This document shows, piece after piece, positions 2,663-16,344 of a stretch of 64,000 bases of DNA. Under the pieces are notes generated by a model, which did no database searches, was not told the origin of the DNA, and saw only the letters and a list, made by a program, of their open reading frames with translations. The translations under genes and the position numbers were made by a program. How positions within the stretch are numbered: the stretch's first letter is position 1; each line of letters starts with the position of its first letter. Source of the DNA: Lepidodermella squamata (Eukaryota; Animalia; Gastrotricha); the NCBI GenBank assembly GCA_047495785.1, contig JBLDXI010000054.1:3844001-3908000 (forward strand), in the 5' to 3' direction.

Positions 2663-4907
2663 ATGATGAGACTGAAGTCGGCCCTGCTCATGTCATGGGC
2701 CTACCTAAAGTACCTATGGGCCGTGTGGTTTCTCCTAGTGGTAGTCCTTATCTACTATCTCTGGGGCCCTTTCAAAATTCGCGATAACGTTGTGCAAGGT
2801 ACGTTCAGCTTTTTTTATCATTATGCACTGATTCAGTACAAAACCACACCGCCTTTTTCAGCCACTGCCTTTGTCAATACTTTGTCACCGCGATTTTACG
2901 TCGCGCTAACCGGAACCTCGTCATTAATTAGTGGTCTCATACTTGTAAGTTTCAGTAAACATAAAATCATGCGCTGTCCTTACATAGTTTTTCTCAGATT
3001 TTTGAATGGTGGTATTTCAAAAGATATGGAACCTCTTTTATCGAACAATTTTCCTTAAATTATTTGTCTCCGATTTTGGGCGGAGCGAACGGCAACCCCG
3101 GTCCTGCTTCAGCGAATGGAAATGGCGTCGCGGGGACTCATCCCGATGGGTCGATGAGGTGCTCGAAAACCAACGGAGCGAATGGCCATCATTTAGGCTC
3201 AGCGAGTTTTTCAAACGGTCGACGCGGTTCGATAACAGCGTTTGACGACGACGATTGGGGCGTGTCGGGTGATGGCGATGGCGACGTCTCCCCACCGACC
3301 TCTTCAGTCATCCAACGGAACCCGATGGCGCTGTTTCGGCGGGCCGAGTACGAGCGCTTCCGATACGCGACAGGCCGCGAACCTCTGACATTCTATGATC
3401 TCAATCTCTCCGCCCAGGAACACCAAGCCGCGTTTCTACTGCCCGGTGAAACCGACTCGGACACTCGGCCCGACCTCCAGCTCATGGAACTGGCGTGGCG
3501 AGAGCGCGACCCGCCCGAACGCGTCAACAAGGCGCATCTGGCGAGGGAAACCAATGCCGACTGTGTACAAGCCTACCTGCTGCTGGCCGAGGAAGAAGCG
3601 GTAACCATGGCAGACGCTGAGAAGCACCTGCGAACCGCGCTAAAACTCGCTGAAACCAACTTCCGACGACCTCCCCCTGTAGTTTTATCCAACGGCATGT
3701 CCGAAAGCGCCGAGATGGCGTATCGGCGAGACGTGACGCTTATATTTTATATTAAACGCCGCCTAGCGATGTGCATGCGGCGACTTGGCCGCGTTCGCGA
3801 GGCCGTTAAAGTTTTCAAAGAGCTGCTGAAAGACTCGGTTTTCAGTGAACTAGCCGAGGTGTTCAGCGTTCACGAAAACCTCGTCGAGGCGTTGCTGGAA
3901 ATGCAGGCCTACGCCGACGTACAAGCGCTTTTGTCGCGGTACGACTCGGCGGTGAGCGAAGCGCGGTCGGCGTGTATGTGCTACACAACAGCTCTCATGC
4001 GGGCTCGTTCGGTGGCAGATAAATTCTCGGCGGACGTAGCGACCCGGCGAGGTTTAACCACGGCCGAGGTCAATGTGATTGAGGCAATACACCGGGCGGT
4101 GGAGTACAACCCGCACGTAGCGCAGTATTTGCTCGAGACGAAGAAGCTGATCTTGCCCCCCGAGCACATCATCCGCCGCGGTGATAGCGAAGCCATTGCC
4201 TACGCCTTTCATCATTTGCCGCACTGGAAACGCGTCGACGGCGCGCTCAACCTACTGCAATGTACGTGGGAAGGCGCGTTCCGGCTACTACCGTCTCCGC
4301 TAGAGTCTGGCTATTTGTTTTATTCATATCCCAGTAATATTGAGCAGACGGATCGCGAATTATTGCCAGGTAATTATTCACCCATAATTTATCTTGAAAT
4401 GTAGAAGCTTTAAAACGCATGAAAGAAGATCATAAAATTGGGCATTATTGCTAAGCCGCTTAGTGTAAGGAAGAAAAAGTTTTATGACGCATGTTACACG
4501 AAATGTCGAAGGTGTGTGAAATATTAATCCGTCATTTCTAAGTAATTGGGTTTGATGCTTCATCCACAATTTCTATTTGCCAATTTATTCTATTCATTTA
4601 TTTTATTTTACAGTGTTCCATGAAGTTTCTGTATACCCGAAGAAAGAGTTGCCGTTTTTTATACTTTTCACGGCTGCGCTATGCTCAGTAATGGCGTTGA
4701 TGACCTTACTAGCTCATAGCTATCCACAATATACCATTACTTTATCCAGAACGGTAAGTATTTCTTTCTTCCGATTTTTCGATTTTTTTAAAAAAAGGCG
4801 ATTTCTAGATTGCGCATTGGCTTAGCAGTCCGATAGCGTTCTTCTTCGGCAAGTTGGAGGCGATTTTACCTTCAGCTTCGTCACTGGCGTTCTCAAAACT
4901 AGGCTGA
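2663..4907 (+). CDS. ST7: Suppression of tumorigenicity 7 (ST7/ST7L) homolog, 5 exons
   Basis: Motifs [32 protein letters not shown]|[45 protein letters not shown] and [19 protein letters not shown]. Last exon ends FSKLG* at 4907. Confidence 0.93.
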
Positions 4908-6710: not shown

Positions 6711-9700
6711 ATGAAATATGAAAATGAGTTGAGTATGGAATTTTGGAGTAACCCGATAATTACTCCTATATTACTCGGTGTCGTCATCGGTGCTACCTCA
6801 ATCGTGGTATTATGGCTGCTATGGCGGTCTTGGAATCACCGCTCCTCCTCAACTCCAACCACGGTACACTGGTTAAATGATGATTTTTCGAAAAATTGAG
6901 ATTTCCTCTTTTCCAGCCACCTCCGGCTTACTCGAGAAGCACATCGCAGGTGCTCAATCGTGAGAATAGCAACAGTGGCACCGATGAGAAGCGCCACAAC
7001 AATTCAGCTCAGGCTAAATTGAGGCGGAAAAGGTTGGATCTGATGCACACGGTGAGCCATGAAATTGCTGGGCTGAGCCGTCGAGCTAGCGTTTTCGGCC
7101 GGAAACGGTTGGAAATTATGAAAAACGCACTGGCATCGCCTCAGCGACAGATCATGTCTCGGCTGGCGAAAGTTTTATCCACGCATGATATGCCAACGAA
7201 ACGAACAATTTCCCACCCGCCATCACGCATGTTCGACGACGATCCGAACGACCCGACTGTAGACCCGACCCAGGCGATCGGAATGCTCAGGGCTATCCGA
7301 GCTTTCTGTTGGGGAGTCGAGAAACCCGTCTTTCAAGACCTTTGCAAGTCGATCGAAACGCTGACCTTCGAGAAGGGCGAGATGCTGTTCCACCACGGTT
7401 CAGAAGACGACTCAATCTACGTTGTGCAGAGTGGCCAGGTGGATTTGCTCATCCTCGAAGAGAACAAAGACTACGTGATAAAATCAGTGCGGACCGGCGA
7501 GAATATTTTCAGCATGACTGCGATAATCGAGCGGTTAGCCGGTTTCAGGTCCTCGCATCAAAACGTAGCGGCTCGTTGCGCTATGCCGTCTCAAATCGCC
7601 CGGTTGCCAATCGCAGCTTTCTGCGCAGAGTGCCAAAATCGTCCTGATCTTTCTTTCTTCACTGTTCAAACAATAATGATCAAGTTATCGAGAGTTGTGT
7701 TCAACGCTCTCCACGCTTGTCTCGGTTTATCCGGCGAGTTGGTTCGAGATTTTCGCTCAGCGACCACCAGTGTGCAATCACTATCTCGGTCGTTGAGCCT
7801 CAGCGAGTCTACCGATGGTGCGTCCCGTAAACGAGCGTCAGCTGCTCGACGCCGTGAGCAAATGAAGCGGTTTTCTACGCTTGATACTAATGATATTAAG
7901 CAACCTGCGCCGGTTATGACGTCGCGCCCATCCTCAGATGTGATAAATGCGCTGGGCGAGGCGAAAATTCTCGAGGCCGTTTCCGCTGATTTGACGCTGC
8001 TTTTAGGCATGCCTGACAAGTCCTTCCTTGATGGTGCGTTGAAGGTTGAAAGTTTTCCGGCCGGTTCGCAGATCCACGGCCAGGATGACCGGTCGGTTAA
8101 CCTTCACATTGTCGTTCACGGTGTCTTGAACGCTTTCTCGAGAATTCCGGGTGAAAACGACCAGGACGAGTTGTTTTTCACTGCACACCCTGGCAGTTTA
8201 TTGGGGCAGTTGAGCATATTATCAAACGAGCCATCGATTTACTCGTTGAGGGCGAAAACTGACGCTGTGATAGTTTCAATATCGCGAGATGCTATTCACG
8301 ATTTGTTTCGCGACCATCCAAGAACTGCAGTGCCTTTAGCGAATTTTGTTGTCTCTGAACTCTCCCCGTTCGTTCGCCACCTCGATCACTCGTTAGGCTG
8401 GAAACAGGTCGAATCAGGCCGGGCATTGTACCGCCAAAACGACGTGGCTGATTGCGCCTACGTCATCCTACACGGCCGAATTCGAACAATTTTGAAAAAA
8501 TCTGAGGAAATTCGAGAAGTTATATCTGAGCACGGGCGTGACGAAGTTGTTGGACTGGTTGAAGTTCTAACCCAATCGCGTCGCATGTTCACCTCACTAG
8601 CAGTCCGCGATACAGAGGTCGGCTCCATTCCAGCCGGTTTGATTCACTGGCTGAAACGGTCACATCCGAAAATCGTGACGAGGCTTATTCACGTGATTGG
8701 AACTCGTTTGGTCGACGTTCGCATGAGGAGCGCAAACAGCGTTGAACAGCCGCTGCCAATGTTGAAAAATCGACCGCCTCTTCGAAATTTGTCCACCATC
8801 GCGGTTGTGCCAGCCTCTAAAGATGTGCCATTATCTTCGTTTACCCTCGAGTTGCAACACTCGTTGAATGCGGTTGGACCTTCATTGCGTCTGACCGGCA
8901 TGTTGGTGATGAGTCAACTTGGCACGTCGGCGTTCGATTCGATCAACGAGTATCATTTGCAAACGTGGCTGTCGCAGCAGGAGGAGACTTATCGAATGAT
9001 TCTTTACCAGTGCGATTCAACTTGCACGCCTTGGTCTCGGTGGTGTCTACGTCAGGCTGATGCGGTCCTGGAGGTTGCACTAGCATCTGCTGATCCGTCA
9101 GTTTCTTCGCAGAGTGAATTCGATCTCGAAAGAGTTGCTGTTCGAGCTCAAAAAGAACTGGTCTTATTATACAAGTGAGTATTCAATTCATCAACAATCG
9201 TAAAAAAAAAACCTCCTTAATTATTTTGGTTCTTCACTATACATCTATCAATTGTTATTTTTATTTCAGACATGACTATCAGGGTCTGCCTCGAAAAACC
9301 TCAGAATGGCTGGCTGCCCGTGGGTGGTGCCACGGTCATCATCACATCCGTTGCCCGAAACGTTTGCTGGCAACCAGCTCACCTCACCGGTTGATTTCGA
9401 CATACAGAAAACTGTTTGACTCTGAGCCGAACCCGTTCAGTGACTTCTCCCGCCTAGCCCGGTACCTCACAGGCACTAGCATCGGACTAGCGCTGGGTGG
9501 CGGTGGCGCTCGGGGCATCGCCCATATTGGGGTTTTGAAGGCTATGGCTGAAGCTGGAATTCCGGTGGACATGGTTGCCGGCACCAGTATCGGTTCTTTT
9601 ATGTCTGCGCTATGGGCGAAAGAGATGAATTTCGGCAAAATGACCGAAGTGGCGGGCAAAATGGCGAACCGGATGTTGGCAAAGGGCTCGTTGTTTTTGG

Positions 9701-11051
9701 ATTTGACGTACCCTTATGCTGGTATGTTTACCGGGCGCAATTTCAACTCGATAATCCGCGACTCGCTTTCCGGCGACGCCGAGGACGGCTCGAGCACCGA
9801 CACTCAGATCGAAGATCTCTGGCTTCCCTATGCATGTGTTACTACCGACGTGACTGCCTCAAAAATGCGAATACACACAAGGTATGAATCGACGGTTTTT
9901 TTGACGATTTATTAGAATTTTTGAATATAGTGGATCGTTATGGCGGTACGTTCGTGCGTCTATGTCTCTGGCTGGCTATATGCCTCCGCTTTGTGATCCG
10001 GCCGATGGTCATCTGTTGGTTGACGGCGGCTATACGAACAATTTACCTGCGGATGTTCTGAGGTTTGTCTCTACCGCATTTAACCATATGAGTTCGTTCA
10101 AATAGAACATAAGCCGCATTTTCATTTTGATGAAAATCATTTACGTTTCTCAATTTAAAATATGGCTCATTTTTCAGGGCGATGGGATGCAGTGTTGTGT
10201 TCACAGTCGATGTTGGTGCTGTCGACGAAACAGATCTCTCAAACTACGGCGACGAGCTCAATGGCTGGTCAGTTATGTGGAAGCGTTACTGGCCATGGGC
10301 GAAGCCGGTGAAAGTGCCAAACATAGCCGATATCCAGTCACGCCTTGCCTACGTAGCCTGCTGCCGGCAACTTGAAGTCGTGAAACAACAGCCTTATTGT
10401 ATTTACGTTCGTCCGCCTATCGACAAGTACAAGACGTTGGCGTTTAATTTATTCGAGGAAATCAACAAGGTCGGCTACAACTATGGCCGCAAGTTTTTCT
10501 CGATCATCAACGTTCGACGATTTTTCTACGATCTCTACAATCAGCGAGCTTTGACCATCAAATCAGCGACATCAGTGAGCAGTGCCGTGAAAAGTCCTGC
10601 CGCGTCTGCTACCCCACTGCAGCCGAATTCCTTCTCAGAGCTAGCTGAGATGGTTTGCCGAGTCGAGCCCGACCTCAATTCTACAATTGACGAAACGGAA
10701 GAAGACACGGATTCAGTTTCAGGCGAAGTTGTTGATGGTCCGTTATTGAACGCAAATTTGCCTCAAGTTGCGTTCCAACTTGGTGATGAGCCGACTAATC
10801 TTACCGTGCCTGGTAGCGACACTAACGGCCACAGTCCGGCGAGCAGTTTGGGCGGAACGTTGGCTCCCAACTCGCGGTCGAATTCTCGGCGTGGGTCATT
10901 CCGTGCCCAGCCTATCCATCAGTTGCTGCATTTGGACGATGATTACGACGATGATGACGATGACGACGAAGATACGGTGTTCGATGATGTAGGAGGTCGC
11001 ACGCTCATGGAACAAGACCGGTCACTTTCCGACACTGAATTGCCCAAGTAA
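6711..11051 (+). CDS. PNPLA6: Neuropathy target esterase / swiss cheese (PNPLA6/7), 5 exons
   Basis: N-terminal TM segment, cNMP-binding-like repeats, and a patatin domain with GGGGARG, GTSIG nucleophile and LVDGG (exon about 9931-10062). The start could alternatively be the ATG at 6735. Confidence 0.93.
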
Positions 11052-11366
11052 GTCATTGAACCCCGCTTTTTTCTTTCGATATTTCAATTAAACCTACAAA
11101 GACCCCGTCAAACCCGAAGCATCCATTAGGCTCAGGTTAATTTGTTTACATGCGTTTGGTGGGAGATCTTAACTGTTTTTGGCAGTGGGGATTTTCATAA
11201 CGACAAGCTTGATTATTATAATCAATAAAAATTGCGGTTTGAGAAGAGTTCGAATTTTGATTTTCGAACCGTTTTATGGGCCTTGATAAGTATTTTTGTA
11301 TTCTAGCAGGATACTTTTGCAGTTTCGAGTCATTTATTTCATAAAGATGTTACATATATTTATTCG

Positions 11367-11403
11367 TGCGACGTTTCGGCCACAAAGTGGCCATCGTCAG
11401 GCA
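11367..11403 (-). ncRNA. Minimal type I hammerhead ribozyme motif (inverted copy)
   Basis: Exact reverse complement of 11521-11557. Confidence 0.8.
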
Positions 11404-11488
11404 GTATCTTAGAATTCGAAAATCGATACGCAGATATAATATCGTCAGGCAGTATCTTAGAATTCGAAAATCGATACGCAGATATAAT
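11393..11488. repeat. 48-bp perfect tandem duplication at the centre of the palindrome
   Basis: 11393-11440 = 11441-11488 (atcgtcaggcagtatc...cagatataat). Confidence 0.95.
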
Positions 11489-11520
11489 ATCTGCGTATCG
11501 ATTTTCGAATTCTAAGATAC

Positions 11521-11557
11521 TGCCTGACGATGGCCACTTTGTGGCCGAAACGTCGCA
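11521..11557 (+). ncRNA. Minimal type I hammerhead ribozyme motif
   Basis: TGC-CTGACGA-T-GGCCAC ttt GTGGCC-GAAA-CG-TC^-GCA: CUGANGA and GAAA cores, 6-bp stem II, palindromic ACGU stem III, UC cleavage site after 11554, 3-bp stem I (TGC/GCA). Confidence 0.8.
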
Positions 11558-13584
11558 CGAATAAATATATGTAACATCTTTATGAAATAAATGACTCGAA
11601 ACTGCAAAAGTATCCTGCTAGAATATTGTGTTTAAATACACCGGGTCTATAATGCAATACGATTCGATACCAACATCTATCGGTTTGGTATTCAGTTCAA
11701 GTATTTTTGTACCTGATTTTCAGTTCGAATGGAATTCTACCTCGATCGATTGGTGCAAGTCGGCAGCTCATGTTCCCGCTTGAAGCGGAGTCTCTTCCTG
11801 TATCAAAAAACATTGGTCGGAGTCACCTATCGCTGTCTGATTGATTATCAATGAACGCAAATATAAAAAACGAACGCTTACCTACTATATAAAATATATA
11901 ATGTTATGATTTTATGTCTTGTGTCAAAATATTTCTCGAAAATGTTATTCAAGGATATTTCAGCTTCAAAAGAGAAACAAATGCGATGACATAGCGCTAA
12001 CTTCGACTTTCATTTGCTGTTACCGGCATGATACGAATACAAACATATTCATTTCTACAAAATTTCTTTCCTACTCATCTGTATCGTCTGTTGTTTGTGC
12101 CCTACAATTGTGACTGTCCATCTTGAACGGCGATGGTGAACATTTTATTTCCAGCAGAGAATTTTGACACGTTAATACCCGGTGTGTCTCGGAAAATTTT
12201 ACGTCAGTGCACGACGAGCACCTCTCAATACGGTGTTTGTTGTCGAATTCTAGTGTTCTATCGTCACAATAATTTATTTTGAGCCATATATAAAACCTTT
12301 TCTATCATCGCATTATACGTGACTGAAGGCAATCTGATTTCGCGATGTAGCTGTAACGTCTATCTTTTTTATATGCAACATTTTTCTGTAATATTGAAAA
12401 ATTTAACAATAGCTGTTTTTATCTTCTCTCTCCGATATATGCTGAGTTAACGACAATAACTGTGTTGTCTCCCTATGTTATTGAGCGCCCTGTATGGTTG
12501 TTTGTCCTTCGTATGGTGATTATGTTGAAGACTGATGCTGAGCCGAAATCACCTCACTTTATCACTTCTAGTTGTTGCCCGCTCTTGCTATTTTTGTGTG
12601 CCCTTAAATTTCGAATAATAGTGTTCTTCCCGTTTTTTTCACTACAAAATAAAAACGACTAAATAATAATAATAATAATATACGTGAGTTATAATAAATA
12701 TTTTGTGCCTTATTTTCAATCTGTCGAGATCTGTAACATTCAAAAGCGCCTACTAGTTTTACATTTTTTGGTCCTAATCAAAAGAGACAGAGAACCTTAT
12801 TAACGGCATCACGTATTTTTGAAAAGCTTGCTTTTAATTAATGTATTCGTGTGAATGTCCACCAGGTAGAGGCTCTTCTTTTCAGCTGCTTTTTAATTCT
12901 GTGAAAAATTTATACAGAAACAGAGAGAGAGGAGACATTGCTTCTGTAATATCCCAGTTTTGTGAAAAAAATTTCTGCAGCCGCTTCTTTGTTCCACTTT
13001 ATATTGTAATCGATACATTAACTAATACTGTATAACTTTTGTTCACTCGGCCTGGTTTAATAATTGTAAAACAGGAAGTCGAACAAATTAAACTGACAAT
13101 AATTTCACTCTATTATGTGGCTGTGATTGTGTGTGGGTGATGAATTTATCGAGTTTAAAAGCCCCGGGAGCGCCATCCCCTGCCGCTCGAGTTCGCGCGC
13201 GCGTCGACCCCCGTTGCGCGCGCTTTTCAAATTGGTTCACTCCGCCCGGTTCGCGTTTGTGTTCAATTAAGCTCGTACATCCGCGAACTTTATTCAGTGC
13301 GCGAAAACGCGATTGCGCAACGCGCAAAATTCAGTCAGGATGTGCGGGCGTGAGATGTCGTGCTGCAATTTTAATGTTGGCTAATCCCAATCGCAAATAC
13401 CTCAATACCTTTGTTATGCGCGCTGCTGGGCCATTCCACCTGACAGAGTCGTGACCCTACGCCGAACTTGGCTTTGCTAGAAAAACCGCCTTAAGCGCTC
13501 GTGTCATTTTCAAGTATTTCGTTTAATCGATAAGCTTTATACCATCAATTTTAGGCGAGTTTTATAAGAAAACTTTAGAAAAAA

Positions 13585-16344
13585 ATGCCTTCGAAAATGC
13601 AAACCGAGTATTCGCGGAATTTCAAGTGGACCGACCGTCCGATCCGCTTCAAGCCGCCTACAGCTTCGTTGGACCCGAAACGCGGTGTTTGCGAGCCTCG
13701 ACGCGCCGGTCTTGCCAGCACTCAAATCGGTAGGTTTTTCTGATTTTTTTCCGATTTTTCCTTAATTTTTTATGTAATTTTTAGGTATTCACCGCGAGCC
13801 GCAAATTCAAGTGAAAGTGCACAGTGCATCGCCTAACCCAGTCCCGTCGGCCGAGCCAAGGCACCACCGGTCGAGTTCAGCCCATCATCGCCACAGCTCG
13901 GGCGCGCGGGCTGGAATTTCGCACAGCGCATCTGGCAGCGCCCTGCCATTTTCCGATCCTATCTACAGACCGGCGCCCGCTGTTGTTAGCTCTGCGCGCT
14001 CTGAGGACGCACCACCCGCTGGCAAGCCAACGTGGAAGCGCCCTGACCCGGCCGCTGTCGTCGCTGAGGACTTCATCCTGCTAGGCTCACAGCAAAAATT
14101 CGCTAGTAATGTGCCCTACCGCCTACGCAAACCGCTCGACCCGTCGCGACTCGCCCAATTACCACCCCAGCCACCAACCGCGACGCAATTAGTCGAAGAT
14201 GCAACGCAGACCGCACAGCCGCGAATTGTCGTCGCGTCCCCGCCTGTCGCTCGATTTTACACTGCCGATGAGAATGTTCAAGTCACCGAGGCTGAGTTGC
14301 AGAATGAAGCGCTCACCCCGCCGCCGTCCCCTCCGGACGCTCCCCGCCCTGGCCATGCCGTCCAAACCGAGGCAGTTCAAACCGATGTAGATGACCATTA
14401 CGCGGTCCGGCAACGCCTGGGTCTGGTCTCCCGTGTCAATGCTGGCCGTTTTCAGACGGAATACGGGCGAAATTACAACCCGAGCCATGCGGTTTCTGCC
14501 CCGTCTTTCCGCAGGATGAGATACGCCGACTCGCCGGTTATGAATGCCGAGACAATGTTCCGTCGCAGCCGATCTCCCATCGCCCCGCTTGGGCAAAGCA
14601 TGCCGTCGACGTTGCTTCAAACTGAGTACAACCGCAGTTTCAAGCCTTACCAATGGCAGTTGCACCAGCAGCCTCGACGCCGGTCGTTGAGTGCCGAGGG
14701 TCACGAGATAATGTACGAAGCTCAAGTTCCGAATCGATCGCCTATTCCTCCTGAGGTCCAGCAGATTCAGTACAAGGACAAGAAACATGACATTAAGGCT
14801 GACATTCTCGGTAAAATTAAGGGGGCTAAAGGGCCGAAGCGGTTCACTTCTGAGTACAAGGCGAATTTCCGCCAACCGTCGGCGTTCCATTACGAAGACG
14901 GAACGTGGCGTGGCGTTGCTCAACCTCACGTTGTCCTGGCTCAAACAGCACCGGCTAACGCGGTAGTTGCCGGTGACCCGAGTTGGATTGATGAAGTTCG
15001 CGAGTTGAAAACGCGGGCTAAGGAGTACCAAATGCGCAACAAGGGCACGCACTTCAGCTCAACGCACGTCGGCCAGTTGTTCAGTGATAAAGCTCAGCTG
15101 TGGGACCAGGCAGATCGGCAAAACGACGGCGGATCCCGTTTAGCCATGTTGGACGTTGCACCTCCAGCTCGCTCCGCCTCGGCTCATTTTGCGGAGCAGG
15201 AAGTTCCTGAGGTAGTGTCAGATTACGTTCAGGTCGATAATTTACCAACGCCTGAAGACCTGATCCGCCCGGCTGGTTTGCCAACCGTTCGTCGAGGAAA
15301 CGTGCGTGAAAGCCTCGAATGGTCTGTCCAATCGCCTGATTCGACCCCAGTCAATACGGAAAGTGAATGCTCATCAGCTGGGGAGGAAGTGGTCGAAGTT
15401 CAAGCGACTGCTACCGAGCAAGCCGTTCAAATTCCTGAACAGCCTGGTGTTAGCTATTTGTTAATTCCGAAGACCACTCGGTCGGAAGAGTCGGCGACAA
15501 GTAGCAGTGACAGTGTGATACCCTCGGCCGCTGGAGGTCGAGTTCGCACGAGCCGGTTGGCGGAAATTCAAGCGCGTGGCGACGGATCACCTCGGCGCCA
15601 TCATTTGGACGTGACCACCCCAGCCGTGGGCGGTGCGATCCTGGTATCACCACCGATGCCGGTTGAGACCTCACAACGTAAAAGCCGTTCGAGCAGCCGG
15701 TATCGCGACGATTCTGGCCGTTTAGTGCCAACAACTGGACATTCTAGCGGGTACTCGAGCGCAGCTCCAAGCCGACCCCGGTCACCTCAGTCGTACGGCA
15801 GACCAACCGGCGATACGCATTTGCTGGTCGACCGCGACCAGCCGCTAAAATTTAACTATGTCAGTGGGCCGAAATCCAAGTCAAGGCCGACCCCGGTCGA
15901 AACTCGTCCTGCAGCTGGAACGATTGAGCAGCTGATTCTGGAGAGGAGCCGTGAAAATGCTGGGGTTTTCAATTCGGGCGCTGCGGCTAAAAAGACGACC
16001 TCCACACGGAAAACGCTGTCTGCAACTCAACCCGTGAGTTCAATCATTGATTTATTTGATAAATTTCAAATTTTTTGTTCATTTTCAAGGTGGCTAGACC
16101 TGATACTAAAGCCTCACAGCGTTCAGCTGCTTTGACCGTGTCGATTCCGGACACATCGGCGACTTACAAAGTCAGCCGTCCGAACAAGTCAGCTGCTGCC
16201 CCGAAGGCGGCCTCTCAAAAGGACAAGGAGCAAAACTCACCGCCTTCTCGCTCATCATCAGCTACGTACAGTGCGGCTTCGGATGTGTTGGAGAAGGCTC
16301 GTTCCCGAGCCAACTTTTGGAGCAAGAGCACTACTGTTAAATGA
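13585..16344 (+). CDS. MDM1: Nuclear/centriolar microtubule-binding protein MDM1 homolog, 3 exons
   Basis: Repeats QTEYSRNF, QTEYGRNY, QTEYNRSF and TSEYKANF; AGLASTQI|GIHREP; WIDEVRELK..AKEYQMRNKGTHFS; HHLDVTTPAVGGAILVSPP; C-terminal ASDVLEKARSRANFW. Introns 13730-13784 and about 16034-16090. Confidence 0.85.

Follow-up and report, generated by a model that had tools for sequence, protein, structure and literature searches.

Penelope-like elements (PLEs) with an endonuclease (EN+) leave a genomic signature, an adjacent inverted 5′-truncated copy with a one-sided tail (PMC8557442), and in vitro a PLE protein cleaved both strands of the target and extended each of them, with two internal start sites of reverse transcription marking the limits of the tail (PMC11167929). 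In that study, the sole one of its kind, ribozyme cleavage was dispensable for insertion. The minimal hammerhead ribozymes (HHRs) of PLEs share the core C3-U-G-A-N-G-A9, G12-A-A14 and A15.1/U16.1 with H17 at the cut site, and a spliceosomal intron of D. virilis Penelope has its 3′ boundary where helix I begins (PMC4209133). Non-LTR (long terminal repeat) retrozymes are described as tandem hammerhead repeats giving circular RNAs (Cervera and de la Pena 2020, cited in PMC8557442). Here we analyzed a 398-bp insert within positions 11288–11711 of a 64,000-nt stretch of the gastrotrich Lepidodermella squamata genome (contig JBLDXI010000054.1, positions 3,844,001 to 3,908,000; hereafter the window), together with related loci of the same 121-Mb assembly, which are given names of the form L048. 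We consider it probable, at roughly 0.72, that the insert is a dead-on-arrival two-armed retrocopy made by an EN+ PLE family, and that its template was a short RNA in which a spliced leader, SL-A, had been trans-spliced onto the hammerhead and tail of the element. The features on which this reading draws are the following, in window coordinates.

11288..11300, no strand: left target-site duplication, 13 nt, identical to 11699–11711
11301..11437, minus strand: left arm, without tail, 100% reverse complement of 11487–11625
11367..11403, minus strand: left-arm hammerhead motif, mirror of 11521–11557
11438..11440, no strand: 3-nt filler AAT separating the left arm from the extra fragment, with no match to the 5′ end of the leader gene in L069
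11441..11485, minus strand: extra 45-nt fragment, consisting of leader (11485–11456) and the first 15 nt past the junction, part of a 48-nt tandem duplication
11486..11516, plus strand: innermost segment of the right arm, SL-A exon positions 2–32, equal to L069 772–802
11517..11698, plus strand: right-arm PLE 3′ region from the putative trans-splice junction to the element end, 98.9% identical to L002, a copy linked upstream to the GIY-YIG open reading frame (ORF)
11521..11557, plus strand: right-arm minimal type I hammerhead, with all minimal-HHR descriptor features of PMC4209133
11626..11698, plus strand: tail, in the right arm and absent from the left, ending in a stem-loop (~11660–11696) by fold prediction
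11699..11711, no strand: right target-site duplication, 13 nt, identical to 11288–11300

Sequence comparison bore out two statements of an earlier note on this DNA, that 398 bp lie between identical copies of the 13-mer AAGTATTTTTGTA (11288–11300 and 11699–11711) and that the insert contains a 139-nt perfect inverted repeat (11299–11437 and 11487–11625, 100% identical), which is the mismatch-free part of 145-nt arms matching at 99% (11299–11443 and 11481–11625). The arm layout given there stood as far as the inverted repeat is concerned, and it had overlooked a perfect 48-nt tandem duplication (11393–11440 and 11441–11488, 100%) and a second perfect palindrome (11441–11485 and 11487–11531) centered on base 11486. 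The tandem duplication adds a third, 45-nt fragment at the insert centre, which stops at the 5′ foot of helix II of the hammerhead (11531) and may have originated either in a template switch or in a later duplication. A lone 13-mer repeated less than 500 nt apart is no unusual chance event in 64 kb; the repeat is significant here because duplications of 12–14 nt frame seven other insertions of the family in like manner. The left arm shares 2 nt with the 13-nt duplication, which places its end at the equivalent of 11623–11625, and on the minus strand it reads leader (11437–11408), AUAC, hammerhead and PLE 3′ region up to that end. The right arm extends 73 unpaired nt further (11626–11698) up to the duplication, and the insert is therefore asymmetric. 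An AATAAA follows the right-arm hammerhead at 11561–11566, and the insert holds no ORF. A Foldback or MITE (miniature inverted-repeat transposable element) DNA transposon was rejected in view of the 73 unpaired nt at the right end (11626–11698), of arm lengths that vary by locus and of centres that contain ORF sequence. The assembly was also searched for a second copy of the left flank of the insert, such as an empty-site allele or second haplotype, and only the window itself matched.

The PLE origin proposed in the earlier note, by an inverted partial copy within a target-site duplication, and the existence of dispersed copies both held. The right arm had at least 45 matches in the genome, and in two of them, L048 (518 aa) and L032 (264 aa), the same 3′ region continues upstream into an ORF with reverse transcriptase (RT) and GIY-YIG endonuclease. 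L048 (contig C17) is a single-armed copy of 1760 bp in a frame of 12-nt duplications, and its 518-aa reading frame matches RVT_1 at E=2.8e-6, just below the Pfam cut-off; L032 (contig C21) holds the last 264 aa of the ORF. The nearest database proteins are 26–27% identical, ~800 aa long and carry RVT_1 and GIY-YIG, and the GIY-YIG residues Y420, Y431, G433, R437, R442, H446 and E501 were invariant in our alignment (A1). The Pfam GIY-YIG model gave no match at E≤1 on the 264-aa C-terminal frame, and because this model was silent the domain was established through the homologues and the alignment. These comparisons indicate that the family is, as judged from sequence, a canonical PLE with a C-terminal GIY-YIG endonuclease. 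No direct pseudo-LTR (pLTR) was present in L048, and around the window copy the only direct unit was the 48-nt one. The earlier idea of a pLTR relic or a heavily truncated copy also gave way to the arms themselves, which end in 30–31 nt of a spliced-leader-like exon at a splice acceptor and thus point to a defined short RNA.

A long interspersed nuclear element (LINE) was rejected as the partner ORF of the family: the 918-aa ORF that lies between two tail copies in L031 belongs to a nested element outside the family. This element (L031 4973–7686) is a 5′-truncated LINE in the plus arm with the end of the AP-endonuclease domain, RVT_1, a duplication of ~7 nt and a 3′ end of ATT repeats. An inverted 3′ fragment of the same LINE (L031 4496–4775, 90–92% identical) is found just outside the PLE copy.

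Each arm contains the motif UGC-CUGACGA-U-GGCCAC-UUU-GUGGCC-GAAAC-GUC-GCA, at 11521–11557 (+) and 11403–11367 (−), which confirmed the two opposite hammerheads of the PLE minimal type I that had been proposed for the insert. In the right arm, helix I is a 3-bp UGC/GCA pairing (11521–11523 with 11555–11557) and helix II a 6-bp GGCCAC/GUGGCC pairing (11532–11537 with 11541–11546) next to a bulged U at 11531; the core consists of CUGACGA (11524–11530), GAAA (11547–11550) and GUC (11552–11554), identical in the minus-strand arm, a palindromic ACGU (11550–11553) replaces helix III, and the cut is predicted after C 11554. The motif shows every element by which PMC4209133 defines the minimal type: the core, A15.1/U16.1, H17, a helix II closed by G10.1-C11.1, a short helix I and palindromic 15.2–16.2. 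It agrees with the hammerheads of Cervera and de la Pena 2014 (PMC4209133) in type I topology, in the CUGANGA/GAAA/GUC core, in the G10.1-C11.1 closure, the 6-bp helix II, the 3-bp helix I and the ACGU palindrome in place of helix III, and in its setting beside a PLE ORF, and differs from them in that a spliced form appears to be fixed in DNA here and that the motif escapes every Rfam model.

Across the genome, the pattern CUGANGA-N(8-30)-GAAACGUC occurred 165 times, compared to 20 for the reversed control, and most of the matches listed had the bulged U, the G...C closure and helix II sequences that differ between motifs yet are mutually complementary within them; helix II thus covaries across the motif types of this genome. 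In an alignment of 16 family copies, the hammerhead block was 96% conserved compared to 76% for the next 75 nt. In its lowest-energy fold the monomer takes an inactive form, with GACG of the core paired to CGUC. Taken together, the sequence features suggest that both hammerheads are intact and belong to the PLE type that depends on dimerization or on protein, for which self-cleavage is a prediction. The longest ORF-bearing copy, L048, has U in place of C3 of the hammerhead core (CUGCUUGACGA, L048 6530, G000:C17). Changes of C3 abolish hammerhead cleavage in published mutagenesis. A microRNA precursor was rejected as an account of the insert, as the Rfam matches to MIR7996, MIR6217 and others were below the cut-off and merely reflect the long hairpin.

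The inner 30–31 nt of each arm are foreign to the PLE and correspond to a leader exon. The 29-mer core of this leader occurs 533 times in the genome, mostly 8.46 kb apart, and locus L069 (G000:C47:6000-15400) is a ribosomal DNA (rDNA) repeat with 5S oriented against the large-subunit, 5.8S and small-subunit genes. Window positions 11486–11516 (31 nt) equal L069 772–802, the exon in L069 being 771–802. This SL-A segment lies ~225 nt upstream of the 5S gene (L069 1027–1145) and is followed directly by GTATGA, 3′ of which come a single-stranded AAUUUGA resembling an Sm site, then a 3′ stem-loop and finally a run of U. A paralogue, SL-B (L069 300–333), is located ~470 nt from SL-A, with GTTAGT coming after it. 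Every rDNA unit carries the two genes, which lie on the 5S strand and have exons of 32–33 nt with the GT donor right after them, so that by its sequence the leader segment has the anatomy of a gene for a spliced-leader-like RNA. Fusions of SL-A to unrelated sequence are scattered elsewhere in the genome, and SL-B has dozens of sites beyond the regularly spaced rDNA arrays. A literature search found no paper on the leader sequence, and no listed title or abstract described a leader-tagged PLE. As a separate feature of the rDNA unit, a near-identical 25-nt box, CGCCAATGACCA-Y-GTGCATGTGGT, is present at L069 449–473 and 969–993, between SL-B and SL-A and ~35 nt upstream of 5S, respectively; it may be a shared promoter element.

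The junction between leader and PLE has the properties of a splice junction. In most copies the hammerhead is preceded by the 3′ end of the ORF, which reads ...TTGTTTTTAG|ATACUGCC, and both window arms read ...CGAATTCTAAG|ATACUGCC where those copies have the ORF end. The acceptor, a polypyrimidine tract ending in AG (TTGTTTTTAG|ATAC), was seen in L002, L003, L004, L008 and L022, and the PLE sequence directly 3′ of the leader junction is AUACUGCCUGACGA. The leader joins the PLE 4 nt before helix I of the hammerhead; on the leader side the break always falls at the last exon base before GT, and on the PLE side always at the base after the polypyrimidine-AG. SL-A is joined at this acceptor in both window arms, L013, L020, L023 and L024, and SL-B at the identical base in L014 and L026. 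Most likely, therefore, to judge from the breakpoints on both sides, the leader was trans-spliced onto PLE RNA before reverse transcription. The splice site next to helix I would thus serve spliced-leader trans-splicing here, in contrast to the cis-splicing of D. virilis Penelope. Chimaeric cDNA could also form if the RT, on reaching the 5′ end of a broken PLE RNA, jumped to an abundant leader RNA. Template switching by LINEs yields chimaeric retrocopies, and the extra fragment and 3-nt filler at the centre of the insert hint at a switch; random switches would scatter, however, and the junction is exact to the nucleotide in at least nine copies and with two leaders, which makes this explanation very improbable.

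A tree of the shared region bears on whether an already fused unit was inherited. Copies with a leader are interspersed in it with ORF-linked ones, branches with good support require each leader to have been acquired at least twice, and the window copy is 98.9% identical to ORF-linked L002 versus 88% to the nearest other SL-A copy. This pattern argues against a self-perpetuating non-autonomous family, similar to a short interspersed nuclear element (SINE) or a retrozyme, in which trans-splicing happened once or rarely and the leader-hammerhead-tail unit has since been DNA-encoded, re-transcribed and mobilised in trans by PLE proteins. Such a family would be in line with the 79–100% identity among several leader-bearing copies, with the clustering of four of them on contig C32 (664–774 kb) and with the argument that animal retrozymes are non-autonomous PLE derivatives (preprint 10.64898/2026.07.22.740005), but it would leave two different leaders to meet the PLE at one AG and both leaders to precede hammerheads of apparently other families, and the insert has no head-to-tail array of one ribozyme per unit. 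We regard such a family as unlikely. Repeated trans-splicing followed by reverse transcription is favoured because neither a single encoded master copy nor random switching explains the pattern.

The same arrangement extends beyond this family. L039 and L053, which apparently belong to other PLE families, have a polypyrimidine-AG 3–9 nt before CUGANGA. The 3′ end of SL-A or SL-B lies 2–14 nt before CUGANGA in 14 genome-wide matches compared to none in controls, SL-A and SL-B are each fused to L039-type sequence exactly at the predicted AG, and SL-A is found 2–3 nt before three further CUGAUGA motifs, all these other-family sites being known from matched strings alone. The new element of these data would be a host spliced leader joined at an acceptor that abuts a PLE hammerhead and recurring in apparently different families. 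It is tempting to go further and propose that several PLE families in this animal are routinely trans-spliced with the host leader at the helix-I acceptor, which would give their RNAs a capped 5′ end and make these RNAs genuine templates, and that the adjacency of acceptor and hammerhead, which recalls the intron end in D. virilis Penelope, reflects an ancient functional coupling of splicing and ribozyme; this proposal is tentative, and we lean towards doubting it. In the relict spliced leaders of retroposed dinoflagellate genes (e.g. PMC5585692, PMC12014239), a DNA-encoded leader likewise marks the trans-spliced template of a retrocopy. Compared to those retroposed genes, the tagged RNA here would be the 3′ part of a retroelement itself, in an animal host, and the copy is two-armed with PLE-type ends.

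Two observations concern leader-bearing and acceptor-joined copies elsewhere. Degenerate leader-hammerhead copies, at least six in number and including L020, L021, L023 and L024, are clustered at G000:C32:664000-775000, some of them head to head at the leader 5′ end; the cluster could be a segmental duplication or an insertion hot spot. In L035, the sequence joined at the acceptor (...GTGCTAAG|ATAC, 4290–4300) is neither the ORF end, SL-A nor SL-B.

We next compared the window copy with seven other insertions of the family, all eight framed by 12–14-nt, mostly AT-rich duplications. Seven of the eight are two-armed (the window copy, L031, L032, L033, L034, L035 and L013), and L048 is single-armed. 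In 7/7 two-armed copies the tailed arm reaches the element end (equivalent of 11694–11698) and the untailed arm ends at the equivalent of 11623–11638, 56–75 nt short of it, so that the one-sided tail of the family measures ~60–70 nt. The centres are different in five other two-armed copies, with 740 nt of ORF in L032, where one arm reaches ~840 nt into the ORF, and filler or other sequence in L031, L033, L034 and L035. The tailed arm of L013 is hardly more than tail. Three arms (L010/L031, L006/L033, L005/L035) are 5′-truncated at the 3′ foot of helix II (11542–11548 equivalent), where the stable helix may stall or redirect the RT. An unrelated 96-nt inverted repeat lies in the centre of L035 (3899–4173).

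The two-armed class is real because the same design recurs at six other loci, even though the palindrome centre of the window, taken alone, might be an assembly artefact. Perfect palindromes are typical of artefacts in long-read assemblies, and tandem or inverted PLE structures are known to trouble assemblies (PMC8557442). A palindrome formed otherwise than by integration, as an assembly fold-back, by snap-back of the cDNA or by later inverted duplication of the DNA, is nonetheless distinctly unlikely: the six other two-armed insertions sit at unrelated loci with the same one-tailed design, five of them have different centres with no common meeting point, and the second arm of L013 is little more than tail. 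Snap-back would likewise give identical arms that meet at the RNA 5′ end, and it leaves the constant stop of the second arm at the 11623–11638 equivalent unexplained. A non-LTR retrozyme was rejected, since the sole tandem is a partial 48-nt unit without helix II and cut site and the full motifs are inverted. The insert resembles retrozymes in being a short, ORF-less, hammerhead-bearing PLE derivative, and differs from them in having no head-to-tail array and ribozymes on opposite strands, from which neither a cis dimer nor a circle is expected.

Comparison with canonical EN+ PLE insertions (Craig et al. 2021, PMC8557442; Frangieh et al. 2024, PMC11167929) pointed to the same mode of integration. 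The family shares with them the target duplication, the AT-rich targets, the head-to-head inverted partial copy and the extension at one end only, and the zones from which its two arms start match the pair of RT start sites found in vitro (PMC11167929). In contrast, the tail is ~60–70 nt long instead of 30–40, no direct pLTR or tandem was seen in the family, and both window arms end at what appears to be a defined RNA 5′ end, the leader, where the arms of canonical insertions end at random truncation points.

These results can be combined in a model of a two-armed retrocopy from a trans-spliced template. The template would have been shorter than the full transcript of the element and have consisted of the 32-nt SL-A, trans-spliced to the polypyrimidine-AG 4 nt upstream of helix I, and the last 182 nt of the element. 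The PLE endonuclease would have cut the AT-rich target with a 13-nt stagger, and both target 3′ ends would have primed reverse transcription, for the right arm from the 3′ end of the element with the tail included and for the left arm from an internal start ~70 nt upstream, without the tail. Both cDNAs would then have run to within 1–2 nt of the leader 5′ end (leader nucleotide 2 or 3) and been joined head to head, with the third, 45-nt leader-containing fragment trapped between them. The arms meet at a near-perfect centre because both cDNAs reached the second or third nucleotide of the leader, and neither arm stops at the cut site, which argues that the template was not cleaved by the ribozyme. 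The earlier note had read the perfect arm identity as a sign of very recent insertion; as the two arms arose in one event, however, the identity speaks only for the absence of mutation since insertion.

Several observations weigh against this model. Immediately beyond the leader at the insert centre, the minus strand reads ATT, which mismatches the leader gene, and the 45-nt extra fragment and the 3-nt filler are without explanation. The evidence for leader trans-splicing consists of genomic fusions and gene anatomy, and neither of the two candidate SL RNAs folded better than shuffled sequence (z-score not significant), so that the fold was not counted as evidence beyond the anatomy. Four unrelated dispersed SL-A fusions share the 10-mer ATAGGAGACG directly after the leader, which counts against the model because simple trans-splicing to different genes predicts no shared sequence there; the 10-mer may be a second mini-exon or the common 5′ end of another repeat class. 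Two-strand priming is read from the structure of the copies. The Rfam hammerhead models, which the earlier note had named as a check, gave no match at the gathering score nor at E≤10 over 11250–11750, perhaps because the motif has hardly any helix III hairpin. Finally, a genome search for a full-length or autonomous family copy found none among the best candidates scored, the longest being L048 with its 5′-truncated 518-aa frame, and the active PLE family assumed earlier is to that extent unsupported. The fusions with the shared 10-mer ATAGGAGACG are those of L057, L059, L058/L066, L060 and L062, near position 1500 in each.

How PLE template RNAs are produced and processed, and what the hammerhead does, are the questions that such insertions address, as natural insertions record the template 5′ end to the nucleotide. 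The family suggests that an uncleaved RNA beginning with a host leader, joined 4 nt upstream of helix I, can serve as template, in agreement with the dispensability of cleavage in vitro, that ~180 nt of 3′ sequence may be enough for mobilisation, and that reverse transcription in vivo makes use of two start zones and of both target strands. It further suggests that the adjacency of acceptor and ribozyme recurs among families, which makes a link between splicing and PLE ribozymes testable, and that the leader can serve as a simple genomic tag for PLE-made retrocopies.

At its present site, the insert sits between two plus-strand genes, with the last long ORF of a neuropathy-target-esterase (NTE)-like gene ~250 nt upstream of it and an MDM1-like gene ~2.1 kb downstream. 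The genes are at window 6896–11051 (NTE/patatin-like phospholipase) and 13811–16135 (MDM1-like), and the upstream gene has cyclic-nucleotide (cNMP)-binding, NTE P-loop and patatin domains. The two ribozymes face each other on opposite strands, and a transcript through both arms would therefore fold into one hairpin; the predicted fold of the whole insert is such a hairpin, at about −273 kcal/mol. Given this predicted structure, the sense ribozyme would be locked to its antisense copy with no dimer in cis, and the ribozymes are most likely inert passengers at this locus; the hairpin could feed small-RNA silencing. Upstream of the insert, an AATAAA is present at 11225–11230, ~60 nt before the insertion site.

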